Sequence record: PP408249.1
Strand: one strand, 5' to 3'
DNA: 64,000 nt
The number at the start of each line of letters is the position of its first letter. Within the stretch, counting starts at the first letter, position 1. Below the pieces are notes generated by a model. That model saw nothing but the letters and a program-made list of their open reading frames with translations, made no database searches and was not told where the DNA came from. Made by a program: the position numbers and the translations under genes. Shown here one piece after another: positions 44,678-63,847 of this stretch.

Positions 44678-46294
44678 ATGTCTATTGTATGTAAAATTTG
44701 TAATAAATCATTTCCTAGTATGATTACAAGTACACATCTAAAAACACATAACATCACTACTGCAGAATACAAAGATCTTTATGGAAAATATTCTCTTGTA
44801 TCAGATGAATATAGATCAAAGCGGTCAGAACAGTCATCTGGCATTAATAATCCTAATTATGGAAATAAATGGTCAGACAGCATGAAAGAATCTATGTCTA
44901 ATAAAAAATCCGGAATTATTCCATGGAATAAAGGCATAGAGTTACACGATACTACTATGTACGTGAAATCTGCAGAACAGAGAGAACTAAAGTACAAAGA
45001 AGGGATACTAACTAGGAAATCATATGTTAGAACTGTAGAAATAAATAAAAAAATTTCTGATAGTGTGAAGAAGTATGCTGCAGAAAATAAAGAAGAAGTA
45101 AAACAGAGAAGTGCCAAAGCAAAAGATACATATAGTACAAAGAAAACGTTAGGGTTAGTGCAAATACGAAAAGGATATAAGTTAACCAAATCACATAAAG
45201 AAATAGCTATACAAACATTAAACAATTATAGGGCTTCTAAAATAGCTGAATCTAATAAACAAATAGAAAGTAATATATCTCTTGCAAATCTAACATTATT
45301 AAATGACATAAATGAAAACAGCTTAGTGTTAAGGTGTAATATATGTAATAATGAATGTTCTTTTACAAAACAATATTTTAGAGCTAGTAAATTTAAAATA
45401 GAATTATGTCCTGTATGTTATCCTAGAAATAGTAATAGATCTGAAAAAGAAAAAGAATTAGAATATTTTATAACAAGTTTAGGTATTTCATGTATAAATT
45501 CTGCACGTATAAACAATAAAGAAATAGATATATTTTGTAAAGAATTAAATATTGGATTTGAATTTAACGGATTATACTGGCATAGTGAGGATGTGTTAGA
45601 GTATTCTGGGTACAGTAAAACAAAAGATTACGAAAAGAAAATATTTTTTAGAGATAAAGGAATTAGATTAATTCAAATATTTGAAGATGAGTGGGACTTA
45701 AAGCAAGATATAGTAAAGAGTAGAATAAGAGCTATATTAGGAAAAACAGAACACAAAATATATGCAAGGAAATGTACTGTTAAAGAAATAAATTCTAAAG
45801 TTGCAAATGATTTTGTAGAAAAAACACATTTACAAGGTAAAGGTAGAGCAAATGTAAGATTGGGGTTGTATTATAACAATGAACTAGTTTCTGTGATGAC
45901 ATTTTTAAATAAAGATATTACTAATAAAACATCGAGCTGTCAGATAAATCGTTTTAGTGTAAAACATAATACATCTATCCCCGGCGCCGCGGGAAAATTA
46001 TTTGCTTACTATATAAATAACTATAATCCATCTAGTGTTATTTCGTATGCAGATTCTCGCTGGTCCGACGGTAATTTATATGAACAGCTAGGATTTAAAT
46101 TAGATAAACAGACACTCCCTAATTACTGGTATATAAAAGATAATGATCTTAAAAGATATCATAGATACAATTTTAGAAAAGATAAGTTGCCCGAAACTTT
46201 ACTAACAGAAAAAGAATATATGGATAGTTTGGGATGGAATAGAATATGGGATTCGGGATCTACTAAATGGGTTTGGACAAATAAAGGGGCATAA
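44678..46294 (+). CDS. Putative homing endonuclease + Mom/GNAT-like domain, paralog 2
   Basis: C2H2-like N-terminus, NUMOD3-like NPNYG.KWS...PWNKG, IDIF...GFEFNGLYWH, SYAD.RWSDG.LY..LGF. Confidence 0.7.
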   Translation: MSIVCKICNKSFPSMITSTHLKTHNITTAEYKDLYGKYSLVSDEYRSKRSEQSSGINNPNYGNKWSDSMKESMSNKKSGIIPWNKGIELHDTTMYVKSAEQRELKYKEGILTRKSYVRTVEINKKISDSVKKYAAENKEEVKQRSAKAKDTYSTKKTLGLVQIRKGYKLTKSHKEIAIQTLNNYRASKIAESNKQIESNISLANLTLLNDINENSLVLRCNICNNECSFTKQYFRASKFKIELCPVCYPRNSNRSEKEKELEYFITSLGISCINSARINNKEIDIFCKELNIGFEFNGLYWHSEDVLEYSGYSKTKDYEKKIFFRDKGIRLIQIFEDEWDLKQDIVKSRIRAILGKTEHKIYARKCTVKEINSKVANDFVEKTHLQGKGRANVRLGLYYNNELVSVMTFLNKDITNKTSSCQINRFSVKHNTSIPGAAGKLFAYYINNYNPSSVISYADSRWSDGNLYEQLGFKLDKQTLPNYWYIKDNDLKRYHRYNFRKDKLPETLLTEKEYMDSLGWNRIWDSGSTKWVWTNKGA

Positions 46295-53749: not shown

Positions 53750-55240
53750 ATGAAACTATTTGAAGTGTTTACTTTATATGAAGATAAAGCAGAACTGATT
53801 GTAAAAAATCAAGGACCCAAGCTCCTTACTGCTGTTAAAAATTATGGATCGAATATTCGTACGGCTGAAGAAATAATGAATGTTCTTAAGAGTGCAGATC
53901 CCACATCTAATCAGACATATTTGCAATGGATTACTAATAGATTTATTGCAGGTGAATTTAGATTAGAAGATACTAATAGAATAAGGGCAGAGCTTATATC
54001 ATTCGAAAGATATAAACGTGTTTTACCGAAAAAAGATATAAATCAGTATAAAACACTAGGAGAATTGTATGCAGTAATTGACCCATTAAATGACGCAGCA
54101 ACAGGCAACGATCTGATTGGTGTATCTAATAAACAAGTTAAAAAGCATGCATATAATGCCAAACGCCAAGAATTAATTTCGTCTGGTCAGGCAGATGTAA
54201 TTTATAAAGGCCAAGAAGGAATGCTAGTTAATCCCAAAACAGAAGATGCAGCAATATTCTTTGGTCAAGGAACTAGGTGGTGTACCGCAGCAACTAGTAG
54301 TGATAATATGTTTAGTCACTACCATAGTCAGGGACCGTTATATACTTGGTTAGGTTCTGATGGATTCAAAGCACAATTCCATTTAGAAACTAATCAATGG
54401 ATGGATTCAAAAGACGAGCCTTTAGACGACGCTCAAATGTCTAAGCTATTGTTAATTCCTATAATTAAAAAATTGTACGACGACGGTATAATTAAATCTG
54501 AGAAATCACTTGTCGGCGATCGCGGCGGCTTCGATGACGAATATGATAATAGACTATCGGATGACTATTATTTCGATCTGTGGGCTGATCGAAAATACCG
54601 TATCAAACAACATATTGAGAAACACGGCATGTCTGAGAATTTAATAGATACACTTTCTGTTAAAGATCCTTTATTACCGTTGTTTGTTTTACCGGAATAC
54701 TCAAAATACCCTGCGTCGAAATCACTCGATGATTATTTTTTAAAATTATCCAAAATAGAACCGCTCGACCAATATAAAGAGATAAATGGGTATTTTGAAA
54801 GCGATATGTTACTTCGATTAACTAGATACCTTGAAGATTCTACAGGGTCTCATTCTAAATCTTTAGATGATGCTGGATTTAATTTTGTTCGTCGATTACT
54901 GGACATAGGCGGAAAGGATTTTGATTTAATAATATCGAACTATCTAAAACATGTAGCTGAGAATTCTAAAACAAAACAATACCTTCTGTCTAATCTTCCG
55001 TTAGCTGTTGAGATTGCTAATTCGATCGAATGGCCGGAACTTATGACAGCAATTGAGCATGAGCTTAGCAATGCTAAAACACCAAAAGAAGAGAACGATG
55101 CAATAAAACTAGGCAGTGATTTAATGTTTAAATCTAATAGCCTGCCTGTATCTAAATGGTTTATTAATTTACTTAAAACTACAGATGCAGGTAAACGATA
55201 CTTATCATCATTACCTGAGTATGACAACACAAAACAATAA
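53750..55240 (+). CDS. Hypothetical protein with PcfJ-like segment
   Basis: ADPT....Y..WI, KDINQYK, G..TRWCTA...F..Y...GPLY; start taken at ATG 53750. Confidence 0.55.
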   Translation: MKLFEVFTLYEDKAELIVKNQGPKLLTAVKNYGSNIRTAEEIMNVLKSADPTSNQTYLQWITNRFIAGEFRLEDTNRIRAELISFERYKRVLPKKDINQYKTLGELYAVIDPLNDAATGNDLIGVSNKQVKKHAYNAKRQELISSGQADVIYKGQEGMLVNPKTEDAAIFFGQGTRWCTAATSSDNMFSHYHSQGPLYTWLGSDGFKAQFHLETNQWMDSKDEPLDDAQMSKLLLIPIIKKLYDDGIIKSEKSLVGDRGGFDDEYDNRLSDDYYFDLWADRKYRIKQHIEKHGMSENLIDTLSVKDPLLPLFVLPEYSKYPASKSLDDYFLKLSKIEPLDQYKEINGYFESDMLLRLTRYLEDSTGSHSKSLDDAGFNFVRRLLDIGGKDFDLIISNYLKHVAENSKTKQYLLSNLPLAVEIANSIEWPELMTAIEHELSNAKTPKEENDAIKLGSDLMFKSNSLPVSKWFINLLKTTDAGKRYLSSLPEYDNTKQ

Positions 55241-55268
55241 ATACAATTAAAGTTTTGAGGTAAGAATT

Positions 55269-56759
55269 TTGATTAATTATAACAGAACTGCTAAAAAAAT
55301 ATTTTCTGTATTAAAAGGGCACAGCTATCGGGTTAAAATGTATGACCTAACAGGCAATGAAGTGATAGACCCAGAAAAAGCTCGTCGATTTTATGTTCAA
55401 TATCCGAACATGATGATAACACTAGATGAAGACACTGGTGAAATTCGTATGAGCAAAAACAATAATATTTCTTTAACTGAATACGAAAGCACATTAGTTC
55501 AGTTAAAGAACATAGCAGTGCATTACATGCTAAATTTTACCTTGAAAGACTTCGGGAGAGAAATAACACCGAGGGATTTTGCATACCAAGCAAAAGTCAA
55601 AAAGGAAAAAGAAATGTCTAACGGATCTGTATCTGAATCTATATCTCCTCTAGCTGGTTCTAGAAAAACAAGTTATCAAACAATAGAAAATGTTAAAATA
55701 CATGTAAAGCATAAGACACATGTCGACGAAGAGATTAGGGGAGCTCGTTCTAGAAATATTTCTGCAATTTTTATAGAACACTCGGGAGAAAGGTTTCGTT
55801 TTCCTCACAATAACTTAGTTGGTGCCCGCGCCATGGCAAGACATATACAGCAAGGCGGCAATCAATACGATTCGATCGGTTCTTATATAATAGAAAGCTG
55901 TGCTAACTATACTAAGTTAAGAGAATTTATGAGATATATTCGTTCTAACAATCTTATAACAGAAGATAGCAACGATGTTATTGCTAATATTAAGGAAAGC
56001 ATAGATAGTATAGCTACAGATTTAAAACGTCTATCTGGTGTAAATACCTACGGTATAGTAAAATCTAGGATCGAAGAAACGGAAGAAGCAGAATGCGATG
56101 TATCTGATGTAGATAAGTTTAAGGATATGTTTACTATTCGTAAGTTTGATGATAAGTTTACTGATGTTCTTCCTATAGTGAGTAAACTCGTTAAGGAAAA
56201 ACAATCATATTTAAAGAAAATAGAAGAAGCAGTTTCTAAACAAATTTATATAGAGTCTATGCCTATTTTAGAAACTAATGCTATAATATATGAAAATCCT
56301 AATATTAAGTTAGGACATAGCTTACAAGAACTTAGTTCTAGAATATTAGAAAATACATTATTAGCTAATTATATTTCGTCAATGGGATCTAAGCTAATAA
56401 AAGAAAATACTTTAAATAAATTCGAATGTTCTATAATTAAATCATTTTTTGAAAACGTTAGTGTTAAAAAAGCAAATACTAATCAAACTAATGGGTTATT
56501 TGCAGAATCGATTAACGAATTTGGGATAAATATTCCTGACTTCCCGGATAATAATCCCTTTAATAAAAATAAAGACAACAAATACAGTAATACAGATTTA
56601 GATAAACACGCATCTGATCAAAAAGTAGATGCAAATGACACTGTCTCTAAAATTGATTTTATTATAAGCAATAGCCACGGAAGATATAATGACAGAGAAA
56701 AATTACTAAAATTGCCAGATGATGTTATTAACAGAATATATTCTAAAATTGCTAAATAA
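55269..56759 (+). CDS. Hypothetical (probably structural) protein
   Basis: GARSRNI.AIFIE...GERFRFP...L.GARAMARH. Confidence 0.65.
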   Translation: MINYNRTAKKIFSVLKGHSYRVKMYDLTGNEVIDPEKARRFYVQYPNMMITLDEDTGEIRMSKNNNISLTEYESTLVQLKNIAVHYMLNFTLKDFGREITPRDFAYQAKVKKEKEMSNGSVSESISPLAGSRKTSYQTIENVKIHVKHKTHVDEEIRGARSRNISAIFIEHSGERFRFPHNNLVGARAMARHIQQGGNQYDSIGSYIIESCANYTKLREFMRYIRSNNLITEDSNDVIANIKESIDSIATDLKRLSGVNTYGIVKSRIEETEEAECDVSDVDKFKDMFTIRKFDDKFTDVLPIVSKLVKEKQSYLKKIEEAVSKQIYIESMPILETNAIIYENPNIKLGHSLQELSSRILENTLLANYISSMGSKLIKENTLNKFECSIIKSFFENVSVKKANTNQTNGLFAESINEFGINIPDFPDNNPFNKNKDNKYSNTDLDKHASDQKVDANDTVSKIDFIISNSHGRYNDREKLLKLPDDVINRIYSKIAK

Positions 56760-56958: not shown

Positions 56959-57945
56959 ATGGCTTCTCTTGCTGAACTACGTCAAAAATTAAAAGATCAA
57001 GAAACAAAACGTGGCACAAAATCATCTGGCAGTGCAGATAAAAGTAATTTCCCATTCTGGGACATGAATGAAAACGACAGTGCTACTGTAAGATTTCTTC
57101 CTGATGCAAACACTGATAATACCTTTTTCTGGGTAGAAAAACAACAAATTAAAATTCCATTTAGTGGCATTGTAGGTATGAATAGTAAACCTACAGTTGT
57201 TACTGTACCGTGTGTAGAAATGTGGGGGGAATCTTGCCCTATTCATCAAGAAATCCGTCCGTGGTTTAAAGATCCTTCGTTAGAGAAATTAGCGCGTACT
57301 TATTGGAAGAAACGTTCTTATATTTTCCAAGGACTTGTTCGTAAGTCACCTCTTGTAGAACAAGAACTACCAGAGAATCCTATTCGCAAATTTACATTCG
57401 GAAGTCAGATTTTTAATCTAGTTAAATCATCTCTATTAGACCCCGAAATGGAAAACATTCCCACCGATTATTTAAATGGTACTGATTTCCAGATAACTAA
57501 ATTAATGAAGGGCCAATATGCCGATTACGCTACATCTAAATGGGCAAGGAAAGAATCTTCGTTAACTGAAGAAGAATTCCAGGCAATCCAAACATATGGT
57601 CTGTATGATTTAAGTAAATTTTTACCTGCTAAACCTGATGCAGAAGCATTAGCTGCTATATTCGAGATGTTCGAAGAATCAGTAGAAGGTAAAGAATATG
57701 ATCCGCAGCGTTGGGGGAAATACTATCGCCCTTACGGGGTTGAAGTTCCTACTAATACTTCCGTAAGTGTACCTGTATCTAAACCAGAACCTAAGACTAC
57801 GGTATCTAGTTCTTCAGTTATAGAAGACGATAACGATGATCTTCCTTGGGAAGATACTACTAAACCTGTAGAGCCTGTCAAATCTGCTTCTAATGCGCAA
57901 GATATAATTGCGCTCATCCGCGCCCGCCAAAACAGCGGCAACTAA
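56959..57945 (+). CDS. gp32: Single-stranded DNA-binding protein
   Basis: VRFLPD...FFW, CVEMWGE.CP, KRSY, G.DF.I.K..KG.YADY..S, acidic tail. Confidence 0.9.
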   Translation: MASLAELRQKLKDQETKRGTKSSGSADKSNFPFWDMNENDSATVRFLPDANTDNTFFWVEKQQIKIPFSGIVGMNSKPTVVTVPCVEMWGESCPIHQEIRPWFKDPSLEKLARTYWKKRSYIFQGLVRKSPLVEQELPENPIRKFTFGSQIFNLVKSSLLDPEMENIPTDYLNGTDFQITKLMKGQYADYATSKWARKESSLTEEEFQAIQTYGLYDLSKFLPAKPDAEALAAIFEMFEESVEGKEYDPQRWGKYYRPYGVEVPTNTSVSVPVSKPEPKTTVSSSSVIEDDNDDLPWEDTTKPVEPVKSASNAQDIIALIRARQNSGN

Positions 57946-57947
57946 AT

Positions 57948-57978
57948 AGGGAGAGGGGATCGCTGATCCCCTCTCTTT
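57948..57978 (+). terminator. Intrinsic terminator
   Basis: GAGAGGGGATC-GCT-GATCCCCTCTC-TTT. Confidence 0.75.
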
Positions 57979-58051
57979 AATATAACCTAAAATAGCCAAA
58001 AAGTACAACTACAATGTTGGAAGGACGGCAGTATTATAAAAAGGACATTTT

Positions 58052-58297
58052 ATGACAAAACCATTCGATATTTCTAAATTTAGAAAAGATATTACCAAAA
58101 GTATCACTGGCATTAGTACAGGATTTAATGACCCAACTATCTGGATTAGTACCGGCAACTATACTCTTAATTATCTTATTAGTAGCGACTTTAATAAAGG
58201 CGTACCTATGGGTAAAGTAACTATGTTCGCCGGCGAGTCGGGTTGTTTGCCTGAAACTGCTAAAGTGAAAATTAGACTATCTAAGAAGCAATCTTAA
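58052..58297 (+). CDS. uvsX: UvsX/RecA N-extein (64 aa) + split intein N-fragment (17 aa)
   Basis: WISTGN..LN..IS....GVP.GKVT.FAGESG then CLPETAKVKIRLSKKQS*. Confidence 0.92.
   Translation: MTKPFDISKFRKDITKSITGISTGFNDPTIWISTGNYTLNYLISSDFNKGVPMGKVTMFAGESGCLPETAKVKIRLSKKQS
58244..58294 (+). mobile_element. Split intein N-fragment
   Basis: Cys1 block A (CLP.T..V) directly after the first half of Walker A. Confidence 0.85.
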
Positions 58298-58306
58298 CTG
58301 TCCAGT

Positions 58307-58346
58307 GTCTCCGTCGAGGATAAATACTTTTATCTAAAACGGAGAC
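58307..58346 (+). promoter_or_regulatory. RBS-occluding hairpin containing a late promoter
   Basis: GTCTCCGT/ACGGAGAC outer stem, GATAAA/TTTATC inner stem, GATAAATA 58319-58326. Confidence 0.7.
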
Positions 58347-58349
58347 TTT

Positions 58350-59783
58350 ATGGGAAATTACAATGTTCTTTCTACAAAAAACTTTAAGAAGCTATGTAAT
58401 GAGTTAAACATAGTAACGATATCAGAAAAGTACATTTCTGATATACGTAAGATAGAAGATTCTGCTAAGAGCAAAGTGGATTCTGCATCTCAGCGTATGA
58501 TATTAACTATGATAACTGTGAAAGTTCCCGACTTATATGATGCATATAACAGATACTATCAGCTCAGAACAGATGGTATTAGTACAAAAACTCAAGACAG
58601 TATTTCTTATATTTTTGGAAAAGACTTCCTCGAATCTGTTAATTTACTAATCAGTAATAGATATAAAACTGCATTCCGTAAAGGAATGACAGTGGAAGAG
58701 GCATTTATAACACGTAATAAAGACTTTTCCAATAATGGTGTGTATTATAACCAGATGACTGATAAGCAAAAGAAACGTTTATCATTATTGCTTAGTGTGT
58801 ATACACCAGAAAGGTTGGAGTTTTATAAAAAGACAATTTCGTTTTTTATTAAGTTAGATTTGACTAATTATGCAGGAAGAATGAAAAGACTGATGAAACT
58901 GGGATCTAGTACGTCTTTATATGCTAGCGTATTACGGTATGGTAAATCTGTCGGAAAAAGCACACATTCATCTGTATCTGCGGTAAAGAGAAACTATTTG
59001 CCTACTTCGATACAATATTGGATGGCAAAGGGGTTTGATGAAGATACTGCATTAGTGAAGATAAACGAACATCAACAGAAAGCAAGTGCCATGTCTTCCA
59101 AAAAACTAAAAGGCACTAGCGAATACTCTGTTCGATCAGTTGCATATTGGATTAAAAACGGGTATAGCGAAGAAGAGGCAAAAGGGAAAGTATCTAATAT
59201 ACAGAATACTTGGAAAAATGTATCTCAAGAAGAGCGTGATCGAAGAATAGAATTGTGGATGACTACAATGAGTCTTAAAACAGACGAGGAGAAATCTTTG
59301 ATAAACCTTAAAAAAACTCACAGCCCGGAAGGGATAATGGCAAGGACAAATTGCGATTATGATATTGCATTTAAGCAAAGCGTTGATTTTTTTAAGAAAC
59401 GAAATAATTCTTCTAAAGTATCTCAAGAACTATTTTGGGGAATTGCCGAGGATATCGATACCGATGGAGTTTACTTTTCTGAACTAAACTACGAATACCC
59501 TGTTATGGGGAAAATAGTAGATTTCTATGATTCTAAAAGCAAAACAGTAATCGAATTTTATGGAAACTTTTGGCATGCAGATAGTACATATACTGATGAC
59601 ACACTGATATATGGAAAAACTGCTAAAGAAATAAGAGAATCGGACATTTACAGAGAAACGTTAATTAGATCATCTGATTTGGTTAGTGATTTTATAGTAG
59701 TTTGGGAAAAGGACTTTAGGAAGAATCCGAAAGAAACAATTAAAAATTTAGTTAATATTTTAAATAATAAAAGGAAATTTTAA
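58350..59783 (+). mobile_element. Free-standing Vsr-like homing endonuclease between the intein halves
   Basis: C-terminal VDFYD...VIEFYG.FWH...VVWE.D; tandem S..YW..KG..E..A repeats. Confidence 0.75.
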
Positions 59784-59786
59784 TAA

Positions 59787-61058
59787 ATGGAATACATCGA
59801 AAAGGAAGTAACAGTTAGTGAACTGAAGTCTCTCTACAGTAGTAATGAATACGAAATTGAGTTAGACACACCAGATGGCTGGCAAAAACTGGGATCTTGG
59901 TTCGATAAAGGCCCTCTTAGTATGGTGACGGTAGAAACGCAGGATGGGTTAGTTACTAGATGTGCAGTAAACCATATGATCGAAGTGGTAGACGGATCGG
60001 AAACTTTTTGGACACTTGCAAAAGACTTGTACGAAGGCCAACAAGTGCTTACTGTAAACGGTGTCTCAACAATTAGTTCTGTAACTGAAAGTGGCATCGA
60101 AGAATGTTTCGATTTCGAAATACTCCACGAAAATCATCGTTACTATGGTGATGGATTCTCTTCTCACAATAGTGGCAAATCGTATATAGTATCAGGAAAC
60201 ATTGTAAAAGATGCACAAGAAAAGGGAATTTTTGTTGTATTACTTGATTCAGAAAATGCACTCGACGAATCTTGGCTACATGCACTAGGTGTAGACACTG
60301 GACCGGAAAAAATGTTACGCATCTCTGTATCGATGATAGATGATGTAGCAAAAATTATTAGTGATTTTGTTAAAGATTACAAGACTAATTATGCCGAACT
60401 ACCTAACAATGATCGACCAAAGGTGCTTTTTGTTATTGACTCGCTCGGAATGTTATTGACACCAACGGAAACTGCACAATTTCAAAATGGTGATATGAAA
60501 GGAGATATGGGCAGGAAAGCAAAACAATTAAAAGCATTGATTTCTAACTGTACAAATATGTTCGGCAACTTAGACATAGGCCTTGTTTGTACTAACCATA
60601 CATATGCATCTCAAGATTTATTTCAGCCTGACGCTGTAATTTCGGGTGGCAGCGGCGCAGTCTATGCCGCGTCAATTGTAGTGGCAATGCAAAAGTTAAA
60701 GTTAAAAGAAGACGAAGCAGGTAATAAAATTTCTGAAGTAGCTGGTATTCGTGCAGTATGCAAAGTTGTAAAATCTCGATATGCAAAGCCGTTTGAGACA
60801 GTAAAAGTAAATATTCCATATGATACAGGTATGAGTCCGATATCGGGTCTATTTGACTTGTTTGAAAAAACAGGTAAACTTGTAAAACAAGGCAATAGAT
60901 ACAAGTACATAACCAAAGATGGTACCGAAATGCTGTATTATAGGAAAGAATGGAATGATTACGATAAACTAAAAGTAATTATGAATGAATTTACAGACGA
61001 AGACCTAGGCAATGTCGTAGAAGTGGAAGAGGGTCATTTAGAAGAGTTCGATGAATAA
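59787..61058 (+). CDS. uvsX: Split intein C-fragment (128 aa) + UvsX/RecA C-extein
   Basis: CAVNH block B, CFDFEI block F, SSHN end at 60170, +1 Ser; then SGKS, LDSENALD, IDSLG, DMG.KAK, SGG.G..YA. Confidence 0.93.
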   Translation: MEYIEKEVTVSELKSLYSSNEYEIELDTPDGWQKLGSWFDKGPLSMVTVETQDGLVTRCAVNHMIEVVDGSETFWTLAKDLYEGQQVLTVNGVSTISSVTESGIEECFDFEILHENHRYYGDGFSSHNSGKSYIVSGNIVKDAQEKGIFVVLLDSENALDESWLHALGVDTGPEKMLRISVSMIDDVAKIISDFVKDYKTNYAELPNNDRPKVLFVIDSLGMLLTPTETAQFQNGDMKGDMGRKAKQLKALISNCTNMFGNLDIGLVCTNHTYASQDLFQPDAVISGGSGAVYAASIVVAMQKLKLKEDEAGNKISEVAGIRAVCKVVKSRYAKPFETVKVNIPYDTGMSPISGLFDLFEKTGKLVKQGNRYKYITKDGTEMLYYRKEWNDYDKLKVIMNEFTDEDLGNVVEVEEGHLEEFDE

Positions 61059-62886
61059 ATTATGCGAAACAGATCGTATTAATATTATCAAATTACACTT
61101 CGATGATTTAAAATCTGTATCTGAATTAAAGAAAATATATGGAGTCTCTTATGATGTCATTAAAACCATCATAAGAGATGAAACGAATCGTCTGCCGTTG
61201 CAAGAAACTGATATAAAAATTTTGAAATTTAAAAAACTTGTTTCAAAGGAGTTGTTATTTGAATTACATGTAATTAAAAAACAATCATTTAATGAAATAA
61301 GAAAAACTTATAAGATTAATGAACTTCATTTAAAACAAGTGTTTAATGATTACGGAATACCAATTGAAAAGTGTTTATATACTGCTACTAACAAGAAGCG
61401 TAAAACAAAAAAGCCTGAAGATTTTACTAAAGACTTTTTCGAACACTTAGTATATAACGAAAGACGAACAATTAGTTGGATAAAAAATAATTATAACTTT
61501 AATTTTGAAGAACTAAAACATCATTTAACACATTTAAAAATCGATTATACTAATTCGTTGCCACCTGCTGTAAAACATCAACAAGATAAAATATCTAGAG
61601 AAACTCTAGCAGAAGAATTAAAAATTAAATCTATTGTTGATATAATAAATGAATACGGAATTTCTAGAACTTATGTAGAAAGCGTTATAAAAGAATACAA
61701 TATACAGTATTTTACAAAACCGAAACATTCTATATTAAGTGGTAAAGAATCAGAAATTTATCGGATGTATTATGATGAATGTATGACTACATACCAAATA
61801 GCAGAAAAATTGGGAGTATGTCAATACACCATATGGAAAATAATGGCAGATAACGGATGGAAAACACGAGAACCGATTAAAAAAATTGATTTGATTTGGA
61901 ATGATATAAAAGAAGAAGTTGTTAAATTAATAGACAACGGTTATACATTAGCTGCTTTATGTGAAAAATACGAAATAACATCTATTACTGAAAAGTTAAT
62001 AGAAGAAGGTATAAAATATACAAAGGGAAATATTTCTTCTGGTCATGCAGAAATATCTGAATATGTGCGTTCATTGGGATTTAATGTAATCGACAATGAT
62101 CGTACTATTATATTTCCGCGAGAAATTGATATTTTTATTCCCGAACTTAACATAGGAATAGAATACAACGGATTATATTTTCATAGCACACGAACAGAAG
62201 GAAATGTAACAAAGCATAGAGAAAAATATAGCATATGTAAACAAAAAGGTATTCGTTTAATACAAATTTTTGAAGATGAATTTATTCATAAGAAAGAACT
62301 AGTAAAGAGAAAATTAGCGCACATTTTAGGAAAATCTAATAATAAATGTTATGCAAGGAATTGTATAGTTAAAGAAATATCGGTAGCAGACAAACGAAAT
62401 TTCTTTAAAAAATATCACATACAAGAAGATTCTGCATCCTCGTATGCATATGGATTATATTATGATAATGAATTAGTTTGTGCTATGTCTTTTCTTAAAA
62501 AGAAGAAATGTACAGAACTAGTTAGATATGCATCTTCTATGCACGTGATCGGCGGATTTTCTAAGTTGTTGAAATATTGTATTAATAATAACAAAATAGA
62601 TGTTATAAACACATATGCTGATCTCAGATGGTCGAATCCGACAAATAATGTATATGTAAACAATGGGTTTGATATACTGTATGAGACTGATTTTAATTAC
62701 ACTTATGTGAGTAAAGAGGATTTTTCAAAAAGGCTTAATAGGCAAAAATTTATGAAACACAAGTTGAAAAACATTTTATCAGATTTCGATAAATCATTAA
62801 CAGAAGAAGAGAATATGAAAAATAATGGATTTTATCGAGTATACGATGCTGGCCATTTAAAATTGCAATATAAGGTTAATAAATGA
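61051..62886 (+). CDS. Putative homing endonuclease + Mom/GNAT-like domain, paralog 3
   Basis: Tandem HTH-like repeats, EIDIFIPE.NIGIEYNGLYFH, ELVRYAS...GGFSKL, TYADLRWS, VYDAG. Confidence 0.7.
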   Translation: MNKLCETDRINIIKLHFDDLKSVSELKKIYGVSYDVIKTIIRDETNRLPLQETDIKILKFKKLVSKELLFELHVIKKQSFNEIRKTYKINELHLKQVFNDYGIPIEKCLYTATNKKRKTKKPEDFTKDFFEHLVYNERRTISWIKNNYNFNFEELKHHLTHLKIDYTNSLPPAVKHQQDKISRETLAEELKIKSIVDIINEYGISRTYVESVIKEYNIQYFTKPKHSILSGKESEIYRMYYDECMTTYQIAEKLGVCQYTIWKIMADNGWKTREPIKKIDLIWNDIKEEVVKLIDNGYTLAALCEKYEITSITEKLIEEGIKYTKGNISSGHAEISEYVRSLGFNVIDNDRTIIFPREIDIFIPELNIGIEYNGLYFHSTRTEGNVTKHREKYSICKQKGIRLIQIFEDEFIHKKELVKRKLAHILGKSNNKCYARNCIVKEISVADKRNFFKKYHIQEDSASSYAYGLYYDNELVCAMSFLKKKKCTELVRYASSMHVIGGFSKLLKYCINNNKIDVINTYADLRWSNPTNNVYVNNGFDILYETDFNYTYVSKEDFSKRLNRQKFMKHKLKNILSDFDKSLTEEENMKNNGFYRVYDAGHLKLQYKVNK

Positions 62887-63083
62887 TTACAGATGTTGAA
62901 GCAATAAATGAAATTTGGGCTGCCGTGCGACCATATATTAAGTCATCTGAGCGCATTCATGCAGCGGACGCGTTTATAGAAGTTTTAGATGAATACGGAA
63001 TGCTTGATGTAGATATTCAAATGTTTGAAAAAGAACTTAAAATAGCAGCAAAAACACATTTAGGTGAAGCAGATGACGACTAA
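62883..63083 (+). CDS. Small hypothetical protein
   Basis: ATGA coupling. Confidence 0.6.
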   Translation: MITDVEAINEIWAAVRPYIKSSERIHAADAFIEVLDEYGMLDVDIQMFEKELKIAAKTHLGEADDD

Positions 63084-63399
63084 TTTAGAATTTAGTGACG
63101 AATTTCTATCAACTGTATCGTCGTTGAAAGCCAATATAACATCCAAAAATAAAGATGCTGTCATAGAACAATTAGACAAATTGTTAGATATGGTAACAAA
63201 AGATATGAATGCAGTTATATGGGTAATACAACCTGAAAATATTAATAACCTACATATACTATGTTCTGATTCATTTAATATTCCTATTAGTCAATTTAGA
63301 CTAAAACGAAGAATACCGTCAAAATCTCAACGAGCTCATTTATTTTTAAAAGTAATTAGGATTGCACTTGCTGGAAAAGAAAATGAACAATTGGTATAA
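63073..63399 (+). CDS. Hypothetical protein
   Basis: Coupled ORF; start 63073 or 63064. Confidence 0.55.
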   Translation: MTTNLEFSDEFLSTVSSLKANITSKNKDAVIEQLDKLLDMVTKDMNAVIWVIQPENINNLHILCSDSFNIPISQFRLKRRIPSKSQRAHLFLKVIRIALAGKENEQLV

Positions 63400-63847
63400 C
63401 ATTGTCTATGCAGATTTATCTAAGATACCTGATTTCATTTCTTTTTTTGAAAAAGAAATAGATATTTCTAAGTCTACAGAAATGTCTTTAAAGGGTAAAA
63501 CTTTAGAGAAACATTGCGCAGAGTTGCCGGGTATAGTGGAGAATAGATTTGCACAGCTTCAAGAAATTGAAGCTGTACTAGAATTACTTAATATTCAGTA
63601 TAAACAAGAAAAAAGCGACAGATTCAAATTTTATCTACAGCAGTTTCCTAAAGCACTTTCTTCTAGGGATGCAGAGAAATATGCAGAAGGAGATCCACTT
63701 GTAGTAAACAGGGCAATATTAGTTAATGAAGTTGCATTGCTAAGAAACAAATATCTTTCGCTAATGAAGGGTTTAGATTCTAAGAATTGGATGGTAGGCC
63801 ACATAGTTAAACTTCGTTGTGCAGGACTAGACGACGCACAAATTTAA
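63383..63847 (+). CDS. uvsY: UvsY-like recombination mediator
   Basis: LPG....RF.QLQEIEA.LE.L, R.AEKY..G; located between uvsX and uvsW. Confidence 0.75.
   Translation: MNNWYNIVYADLSKIPDFISFFEKEIDISKSTEMSLKGKTLEKHCAELPGIVENRFAQLQEIEAVLELLNIQYKQEKSDRFKFYLQQFPKALSSRDAEKYAEGDPLVVNRAILVNEVALLRNKYLSLMKGLDSKNWMVGHIVKLRCAGLDDAQI

Follow-up and report, generated by a model that had tools for sequence, protein, structure and literature searches.

The closest described counterpart of the locus reported here is VidaL, an intein in the recombinase UvsX that is known from an Antarctic Lake Vida metagenome (Burton et al. 2020, as cited in PMC13014065). That source describes VidaL as cysteine-dependent, with an N-terminal intein fragment (IntN) of 16 amino acids (aa), a half-life of about 1 min at 37 °C and a break at site S1, which is defined as lying after the second strand (PMC13014065). 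A second counterpart is the group of fractured genes of Dassa et al. 2009 (PMC2677866), in which a free-standing endonuclease gene lies between the halves of a split intein. We analyzed a stretch of 64,000 nucleotides (nt) from sequence record PP408249.1 (referred to throughout as the window; record position equals window position plus 62000), which comes from the Pseudomonas jumbo phage vB_Pa-PAC2, genus Wroclawvirus (PA5oct group), family Arenbergviridae. The uvsX gene of this phage is divided among three open reading frames (ORFs), and it is very probably a fractured gene, in which a VidaL-type class-1 intein at the Walker A motif was broken after strand 2 by a Vsr-like endonuclease gene.

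The window element shares with VidaL the host protein UvsX, class-1 chemistry with Cys1, the S1 split after strand 2, and a C-terminal intein fragment (IntC) that carries blocks B, F and G and is 51-52% identical. For IntN the comparison was made through the nearest VidaL relatives in the IMG/VR collection (L043-L046), whose IntN is 16 aa long and follows the same CLPxxAxVxxRLxKK pattern as that of the window. The two elements differ in IntN length (16 versus 17 aa) and in about half of the IntC residues; in addition, VidaL comes from a metagenome and has been characterized biochemically and structurally, whereas the window element comes from cultured isolates with a laboratory host and is known from sequence. 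The fractured genes of Dassa et al. have in common with the window the free-standing endonuclease gene, a hairpin in the 5' untranslated region (UTR) that sequesters the ribosome-binding site (RBS) and holds a late-promoter-like element of the TATAAATA type, and the existence of variants with a decayed endonuclease gene or none. UvsX, however, is absent from their eight fractured host types, and all of their inteins but one, in a terminase, are split at the canonical site (PMC2677866). Fifteen of those loci, and metagenomic relatives of the window locus, overlap the endonuclease and downstream ORFs by 6-69 nt, whereas the window has a 3-nt spacer.

Naturally split inteins with atypical break points are known with IntN of 15-37 aa (PMC13014065, PMC10189870), and the P-loops of ATPases are a known hot spot for inteins (PMC4760082). 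AceL-TerL and GOS-TerL resemble the window intein in being naturally split inteins of environmental phages in which a long IntC is paired with a short IntN of 25-37 aa, and GOS-TerL lies in a fractured gene; they differ in their host, the large terminase, in their longer IntN and in their S2 split, which falls after the first helix (PMC13014065). Terminase inteins of the phage collection that we searched were about 31% identical to the window IntC. The OarG intein of PolB16 (PMC10189870) likewise has a natural S1 split and a 15-aa IntN in a phage-like gene of DNA metabolism, but it uses Ser1/Ser+1 chemistry, belongs to an unrelated lineage with a PolB host, and is reported to be slow and prone to side reactions (PMC10189870).

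The split intein at the Walker A motif of uvsX

The features of the locus are listed in Table 1. Both outer pieces are recognizable as parts of one recombinase. The N-extein matched PHROG 97 (UvsX-like recombinase) over residues 1-65 with an E value of 3.3e-13 and aligned with residues 26-64 of the UvsX structure 9gbg in the PDB. The C-extein had hits to the Pfam RecA family (E value 2.2e-10) and to PHROG 97 (E value 1.7e-46), and matched residues 66-291 of 9gbg, with C-extein residue 2 at 9gbg residue 66, as well as T4 UvsX (3io5). Walker B and the other positions that are invariant in the RecA core are kept in the exteins. In three uninterrupted metagenomic UvsX proteins (P0090, P0134 and P0095), residues 1-64 correspond to the N-extein and the C-extein begins at residue 65, with a junction that reads FAGESGSGKS in P0090 and P0134 and GESGAGKS in P0095. 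Since the exteins abut exactly on uninterrupted UvsX, taking out the insert would leave a normal Walker A motif in which every residue is present once. The first-pass annotation, made from the letters of the window, had split the motif as GESG / C... and ...SSHN / SGKS, with GESGSGKS restored on joining; its coordinates were exact, and this is the sequence that P0090 and P0134 carry.

Table 1. Features of the interrupted uvsX locus, in window positions
Feature	Position	Strand	Description or basis
AAGGA RBS-like motif	58041..58045	+	6 nt upstream of ORF1 ATG, read from sequence
ORF1	58052-58297	+	81 aa: 64-aa N-extein and 17-aa IntN, then stop
uvsX N-extein	58052..58243	+	64 aa; ends ...VTMFAGESG, first half of Walker A
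Putative mobile cassette	58244..60170	+	1927 nt: IntN, hairpin, endonuclease gene and IntC; low-diversity island in Wroclawvirus
IntN	58244..58297	+	17 codons (58244-58294) and stop; CLPETAKVKIRLSKKQS; Cys1, block A, CLP...
Predicted RNA hairpin	58307..58346	+	endonuclease 5' UTR; 8-bp outer stem 58307-58314 / 58339-58346
ORF2, free-standing endonuclease gene (putative)	58350..59783	+	477 aa, own ATG, same strand, between IntN and IntC
Predicted Vsr-like nuclease domain	59457..59783	+	about residues 370-477; motifs, model pLDDT >90
Candidate catalytic residues	D391 59520-59522; E402 59553-59555; H409 (FWH) 59574-59576; D432 59643-59645	+	conservation and spacing
AAGGA RBS-like motif	59771..59775	+	11 nt upstream of IntC ATG, inside 3' end of endonuclease gene
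ORF3	59787-61058	+	423 aa: 128-aa IntC and 295-aa C-extein
IntC	59787..60170	+	128 aa; block B (..TRCAVNH..), block F (..CFDFEILHENHRYY..), block G; ends ...GDGFSSHN
uvsX C-extein	60171..61058	+	295 aa and stop; starts SGKSYIVSG: Ser+1 and second Walker A half

The same annotation had proposed an atypically split intein, and the alignment with known split inteins that it suggested points the same way. In a sequence search IntC matched the VidaL intein (PDB 6vgv/6vgw) with an E value of 1.7e-35 and about 51% identity over residues 5-127, with weaker matches to other inteins (DnaX, DnaE, GyrA and DnaB). The AlphaFold model of the ORF3 product, in which IntC has a predicted local distance difference test score (pLDDT) of 74-94, gave 6vgv as its best PDB match (E value 5.2e-13, template modeling score 0.80 normalized to VidaL, root mean square deviation 1.7 Å, 52% identity); further matches were to UvsX and RecA structures for the C-extein and to the Mtu RecA, Ssp DnaB and gp41-1 inteins for IntC. 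All of these searches and models used the separate pieces, with IntN and IntC unjoined. Residue 5 of IntC corresponds to residue 23 of the fused VidaL chain, which puts the break at S1, after strand 2, as in VidaL; contiguous relatives carry only a short loop at this point. The 17-aa IntN and the 128-aa IntC with an ATG of its own were both confirmed by the ORF list and the sequence, the ATG at 59787 being the first codon past two in-frame stops, so that IntC has its own start. The AAGGA motif before this ATG belongs to an element, AAGGAAAU, that also precedes the IntC ORF in three relatives lacking the endonuclease gene (L026, L043 and L058).

Blocks B, F and G, which had been claimed for IntC, are all present and their catalytic residues are invariant among relatives. 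Cys1 follows GESG directly in ORF1 and does not vary among the 69 split and 19 contiguous relatives. Among seven split relatives, 37 IntC columns are invariant, including H63, D109, H117, H127 and N128. The catalytic histidine of block B is His63, also invariant, and the residues of blocks F and G that do not vary among split relatives are C107, D109, F110, H114, N116, H117, R118, Y119, H127, N128 and S129, the last of which is Ser+1. By its sequence, the insert is a VidaL-type class-1, Cys1/Ser+1, S1-split intein.

The 69 distinct IntN that we collected from split UvsX loci and proteins comprised 35 of 15 aa, 16 of 16 aa, eight of 17 aa, five of 18 aa, four of 19 aa and one of 20 aa. The window IntN had been set beside very short IntN pieces; its length of 17 aa was stated exactly, but it is ordinary for a family that ranges from 15 to 20 aa with a mode of 15. 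The 35 natural IntN of 15 aa equal the shortest characterized natural IntN, that of PolB16, but have Cys1 and VidaL-like partners, and such pieces may serve protein semisynthesis. The IntN are basic, with a median net charge of +4 (+4 in the window as well), whereas the equivalent 17 residues of the 19 contiguous relatives have a median charge of 0 (Mann-Whitney P = 6e-10). The IntC are acidic, from -9 to -17, with the window at -17. Electrostatic docking has been described for other split inteins (PMC2677866), and the charge complementarity of IntN and IntC looks like an adaptation that came after the break.

Judged from these sequences, it is highly likely that the uvsX halves are joined by protein trans-splicing. 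The 81-aa and 423-aa products would be translated separately, each from its own RBS, and the basic IntN (+4) would dock into the acidic and nearly complete IntC (-17), bringing with it strands 1-2 and Cys1. Class-1 trans-splicing would then proceed by an N-S acyl shift at Cys1, trans-esterification to Ser+1, cyclization of Asn128 and an O-N shift. The expected outcome is a 359-aa UvsX (about 40 kDa) with the P-loop GESGSGKS and a non-covalent IntN/IntC by-product; the tryptic junction peptide of the spliced protein would be VTMFAGESGSGK. The recombination-dependent functions of the phage would hang on this reaction.

The ORF3 product is flagged as having been found by tandem mass spectrometry with electrospray ionization (ESI-MS/MS) in the PA5oct record (MK797984, EST35_0210), as is the single-stranded DNA-binding protein gp32 (EST35_0207; window 56959-57945). 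Both are labeled 'structural protein' in that record because ESI-MS/MS of virion preparations yielded their peptides; for proteins of replication and recombination, co-purification is a more likely explanation of these peptides than a structural role.

The putative endonuclease gene and the predicted hairpin before it

ORF2 belongs to a family in which we found 23 homologs, two of them labeled very-short-patch-repair endonuclease by their sources. PF18741 (REase_MTES_1575) was matched by eight of 22 family members and DUF559 by three of 22. D391, E402, G405 and H409 are invariant among 21-22 homologs, while W408 and D432 are nearly so. The spacing D391-E402-H409-D432 is 11/7/23, which compares with 11/7/28 for D51-F62-H69-D97 of Vsr, and F407-W408-H409 is the counterpart of Vsr Phe67-Trp68-His69. 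A glutamate that is invariant where Vsr has Phe62, the place taken by E402, is the hallmark of Vsr-like homing endonucleases (PMC2677866).

The AlphaFold model of the ORF2 product (mean pLDDT 85) has a helical N-terminal region, presumed to bind DNA, followed by an alpha/beta C-terminal domain. When this model was compared with the PDB, the only compact-domain matches at a probability of 0.6 or more were E. coli Vsr (1cw0 and 1vsr, 0.75-0.77) and the DUF559 protein 3hrl; PvuRts1I had a probability of 0.41-0.47 and AbaSI a lower one. The E value for Vsr was about 2 and all E values were non-significant, because the query was the whole 477-aa model. In the BFVD database the model matched the Aes123 (Aeromonas phage) 'putative VSR endonuclease' with an E value of 5.9e-10, a DUF559 protein (7e-5), a NUMOD3 protein (5e-4) and a 'DNA mismatch endonuclease' (7e-4). 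On the family-level hits, the motif spacing and the predicted fold taken together, we accept ORF2 as encoding a putative Vsr-like homing endonuclease of the Vsr / DUF559 / MTES_1575 branch of the PD-(D/E)XK superfamily; motif spacing, family Pfam matches and fold thus agree with the earlier proposal of a Vsr-like endonuclease gene between the intein halves.

The predicted hairpin ends 3 nt before the ORF2 ATG and has a folding free energy of -22.8 kcal/mol (z = -4.1), a stability that none of 200 shuffled sequences reached. The GGAG of the likely endonuclease RBS (58341-58344) lies in its 3' arm, and the octamer GATAAATA (58319-58326) lies in the inner stem-loop. A comparable hairpin that pairs the region before the ATG was present in 13 of 17 distinct endonuclease-bearing relatives, with stems that differ in sequence and keep their complementarity, and [T/G/A]ATAAATA was carried by 12 of the 17; neither the hairpin nor the octamer was seen in the three endonuclease-less loci analyzed. 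Hairpins that pair the RBS were reported in 15 of 16 5' UTRs of fractured-gene endonucleases by Dassa et al. 2009 (PMC2677866), who likened them to the hairpin of the endonuclease that fractures nrdA of Aeh1, in which the RBS is sequestered and translation attenuated (PMC2677866). By analogy, the window hairpin would silence the endonuclease gene on read-through transcripts, and its translation would probably occur on late transcripts beginning within the hairpin. Of the T4-type late-promoter octamer TATAAATA the window as a whole has few copies, 10 against 22.9 ± 4.4 expected (100 of 100 shuffles had at least 10), and a consensus scan for promoters and terminators returned 19 promoter-like sites against 15.2 expected.

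Relatives, cassette diversity and competing explanations

The same insertion point is occupied by a contiguous intein in other phages. Salicola phage SCTP-2 gp204 is a single-ORF UvsX with a contiguous mini-intein at GDSG / C...HN / SGKS, 52% identical to IntC, whose first residues (CLPEDAIVNVR...) match IntN. This protein (L003:3743-5713), annotated as 'hypothetical protein', holds two contiguous mini-inteins in one UvsX; the second is unrelated and lies further downstream, at ...ISGG / C...VVSHN / SGQ. A search of a 5.8-billion-protein collection with IntC returned 15 UvsX proteins, seven of them contiguous (456-509 aa) and eight starting at IntC (413-453 aa). In the contiguous same-site proteins (P0003, P0008 and P0011-15), as in SCTP-2, the intein opens with the motif CLPxxAxVxIR. 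Together these contiguous mini-inteins share with the window the insertion point GxSG / C...HN / SGKS and the first residues CLPEDA.V.VR, and differ in being read in one frame, in lacking an endonuclease, in having a short linker in place of the stop, endonuclease gene and start, and in having N-terminal 17 residues that are not basic.

The genes around the proteins that start at IntC were surveyed for six of the eight and for L011, which encodes P0004, with P0005 left out. The layout of the window recurred in all six (P0001, P0002, P0006, P0007, P0009 and P0010): an ORF of about 80 aa ending in IntN, then an ORF of the ORF2 family (344-482 aa), then the IntC-UvsX ORF. IntN, read in the five of these loci with DNA, was 15-16 aa long. 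L011 keeps the IntC and the ORF with a 15-aa IntN, and its endonuclease is reduced to a 58-aa C-terminal remnant. A pattern scan of IMG/VR with the IntC alignment found 301 relatives, so the layout, which the first-pass annotation had taken to be rare, is not rare in environmental phage data.

Among the best 80 of these 301 relatives there were at least 30 split UvsX loci and at least 17 contiguous ones. Within that set, six split loci had no endonuclease gene and only 55-104 nt between the ORFs (L026, L043, L044, L058, L061 and L062), three had visibly decayed endonuclease remnants (L035, L050 and L051), the closest relatives of VidaL (L043-L046) included endonuclease-bearing and endonuclease-less forms, and some relatives interrupted the P-loops of other ATPases. 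Every split UvsX relative is broken at the same place, the variable linker of the contiguous forms, from CLPxxAxVxI.. to ..TVxEL. The forms thus seen (contiguous, split with endonuclease, split with decayed endonuclease and split without endonuclease) are the series proposed as the evolutionary path of fractured genes (PMC2677866), and the fact that both halves are kept where the endonuclease has been lost speaks for a working split intein. The overlap of the endonuclease and IntC ORFs was 8-37 nt in L005 and L007-L010. Pairwise identities of inteins and exteins (47 loci, 1081 pairs) were correlated with r 0.52, which gives no clear amino-acid-level signal of transfer between distant lineages.

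The P-loop is also interrupted in other ATPase genes, by related atypically split inteins that share 36-39% identity with IntC. One of these inteins lies in a PIN/PhoH-like gene of an uncultured 462-kb phage (L004:1662-4924; LR756500), with GKAG / C...26 aa and a stop, then a Vsr-like endonuclease, then ...SSHN / TGKT. The further loci are L078; L074-L076 and L080; and L077, L079 and L081-L101; in other hosts the residues after the intein read TGVGKS, TGCGKS or SGSGKS. The range of ATPase hosts indicates that this intein lineage targets the Walker A motifs of several protein families.

We also compared variation in the exteins and in the cassette, using an alignment of seven Wroclawvirus isolates over 57900-61200; the background of 0.0185 variable sites per nt was taken from a 27-kb alignment of five isolates. 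The exteins contain 29 variable sites, all synonymous; the N-extein (192 nt) has 11 of them and the C-extein (888 nt) has 18. With 29 synonymous and no non-synonymous changes, both uvsX halves appear to be under strict purifying selection, which is hard to square with a dead gene. The cassette, in contrast, shows a single variable site against an expectation of 35.7 (Poisson P = 1e-14), and none of the other non-overlapping 1927-nt windows of the 27 kb has fewer than 16. The lone cassette variant is a non-synonymous change (L302S) in the endonuclease, private to the PAC2 window. On the N side, the extein variant closest to the junction is 13 nt upstream of it; on the C side, it is 105 nt downstream. 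Such near-zero diversity implies that the ancestor of the cassette is much more recent than that of the gene around it, and the simplest reading is that the cassette spread recently and horizontally, as a whole unit, into diverged uvsX alleles (homing). The N-extein (58052-58243) has a density of variable sites about three times the background (5.7% versus 1.85%), with many sites private to single isolates; one possibility is that this is the footprint of repeated repair and co-conversion at a homing site.

That the endonuclease itself drove the homing of the cassette we consider rather probable, though with clearly less assurance than the trans-splicing. In mixed infections the enzyme would cut cassette-free uvsX alleles, and repair would copy the whole cassette, which would explain a near-identical cassette beside diverged uvsX flanks. 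The chief competitor of this proposal holds that splicing works but the endonuclease is an inactive passenger, low diversity then reflecting one recent recombinational import or a local sweep. All 11 isolates carry the cassette, so the sampled population offers no present target, the sole cassette variant alters an endonuclease residue, and decayed and lost endonucleases are common among relatives, all of which fit a passenger. The ORF is nevertheless full length, D391, E402 and H409 are invariant and D432 nearly so, the regulatory hairpin is retained, and the edges of the island fall within 13 nt and 105 nt of the intein boundaries, inside diverged uvsX alleles. Edges at the intein boundaries are what nuclease-driven copying predicts, and a sweep with ordinary recombination breakpoints predicts them less well; we regard the inactive passenger as unlikely, though it deserves serious attention. 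A stronger form of the homing proposal, which we put forward tentatively and with less than even confidence, is that the cassette is a currently active mobile unit that homes whole into the P-loop codons and whose recent sweep through Wroclawvirus populations spans isolates from three continents. If so, phages grown on PAO1 would be the first tractable in vivo system for a Vsr-like endonuclease mobilizing a split intein, and would put to the test the model of Dassa et al. in which split inteins originate in this way, acquire charge-complementary halves and outlive their endonucleases; the interrupted gene, moreover, would encode the recombinase used by the homing repair itself.

Other explanations concern the joining of the halves. 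They might be held together non-covalently by the intein fragments, or be spliced slowly or conditionally. The strong charge complementarity would give tight association, Cys1 chemistry is in principle redox-sensitive, and conditional splicing is documented in other P-loop inteins. RecA-family ATPases, on the other hand, need an uninterrupted P-loop backbone to bind nucleotide, the residues for all four splicing steps are invariant, and VidaL, a close homolog, splices to completion in about 1 min (PMC13014065), so that we think a non-covalent or conditional arrangement improbable. That uvsX is broken and decaying, with recombination supplied by host RecA or another phage protein, is less probable still. 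Some GenBank records do call the pieces hypothetical proteins, but such decay is at odds with the absence of non-synonymous extein changes among isolates, with intact catalytic residues of the intein, Walker B and RecA-core invariants, with a split layout conserved in many divergent phages even after endonuclease loss, and with an ORF3 product that is made according to the ESI-MS/MS flag of the PA5oct record. We give hardly any credence to a group I or other self-splicing intron with an endonuclease gene, which would join the halves as RNA: a stable hairpin does lie within the interruption, but an Rfam 15 cmscan of 57500-63500 at E <= 1 gave no match and no group I core (P3-P9), the sequence at its borders codes for blocks A, B, F and G of an intein with a solved homolog, relatives read the same element in frame as a contiguous intein, and every piece has its own stop, start and RBS.

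Several observations weigh against the fractured-gene model preferred here, in which the intein trans-splices and its endonuclease homes. Searched by itself, ORF2 had no match in Pfam, PHROG, NCBIfam or the sequence and profile searches of the PDB, and its assignment rests on family hits, motif spacing and the predicted fold. The octamer in the hairpin is GATAAATA and not TATAAATA, and the T4-type late-promoter consensus may not be that of this phage. ORF2 and the IntC ORF do not overlap, being separated by a 3-nt spacer (TAA), whereas most relatives overlap. The cassette is present in all 11 sequenced Wroclawviruses, with no empty site in the genus, so that the diversity pattern is the only basis for homing. 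The MS flag for the ORF3 product names no peptides, and the 359-aa spliced protein, its junction peptide and DNA cleavage rest on inference. The canonical threonine of block B is replaced by alanine (AVNH) throughout the family, which is weak counter-evidence because the active VidaL shares this alanine.

The phage, its annotation and neighboring genes

Over 57900-61200 the window matches the PAC2 record (PP408249) at 100% identity, and ten more Wroclawvirus records are at least 99.4% identical to it there: PA5oct (two records), MIJ3, Paride, Cassandra, Deifobo, Ettore, Callisto, 30-2 and 30-3. These genomes are about 287 kb in size and the host is P. aeruginosa. In GenBank the three uvsX ORFs go under varying names ('RecA-like protein', 'UvsX-like recombinase', 'structural protein', 'hypothetical protein' and 'recA'), and none of the Wroclawvirus records annotates an intein at uvsX. 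Within the library of papers searched, 'UvsX' together with 'intein' returned no paper describing the Wroclawvirus uvsX intein. In the MIJ3 paper the sole intein described is a split one in the gene for DNA polymerase B; the papers on PA5oct and Paride speak of neither inteins nor uvsX, the text of the former also being silent on the ORF3 and gp32 genes, and a comparative paper on jumbo phages does not mention the Wroclawvirus uvsX intein. As far as we found, the intein is thus unannotated and undescribed in this phage group, and its annotation in GenBank and the literature can be corrected. The intein type and the fractured-gene type were already known; what is new is the population evidence, from the trough in cassette diversity, for recent movement of the cassette, which also provides a concrete test of the fractured-gene model for the origin of split inteins.

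In a collection of 50,697 phage records, no cultured phages other than the Wroclawviruses had a split relative of the window intein. A standard laboratory strain supports growth of the cultured phages (PA5oct, MIJ3, Paride, PAC2 and others) in which an ultra-short split intein of the VidaL type is now placed, so that natural trans-splicing, its timing and the need for it in recombination-dependent replication can be tested in vivo, beyond engineered constructs. For protein engineers, the 69 distinct short IntN and their IntC partners constitute a natural library.

The uvsX locus is preceded by gp32 and followed by genes for a Hef-like homing endonuclease, UvsY and UvsW. The Hef-like gene (61051-62886, plus strand) is a second free-standing endonuclease gene and starts 8 nt inside the end of uvsX; its 611-aa product (ORF4) has helix-turn-helix repeats, a weak match to the MTES_1575 nuclease and a match to PHROG 3339 'homing endonuclease' with an E value of 3.6e-95. 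A kinship of ORF2 to ORF4 was considered and rejected by BLASTP, and with nuclease genes of both types at the locus, uvsX is flanked or invaded by two different selfish nucleases. Another Hef-like gene is annotated in the PAC2 record about 15 kb upstream (window ~44678-46294).

Two further sites of variation were noted among the Wroclawvirus isolates. The window from about 53900 to 55400 is hypervariable: each 500 nt holds 120-210 variable columns, compared with about 9 elsewhere; the block corresponds to an ORF after the large terminase gene, annotated as hypothetical or structural protein, and looks like an allelic replacement. Directly past the gp32 stop codon, at 57951-57975, there is an 11-bp GC-rich palindrome, which the scan scored as terminator-like on the minus strand and which is followed by a weak T-tract on the plus strand. 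Its loop (57962-57964) holds three of the sites that vary among the isolates.

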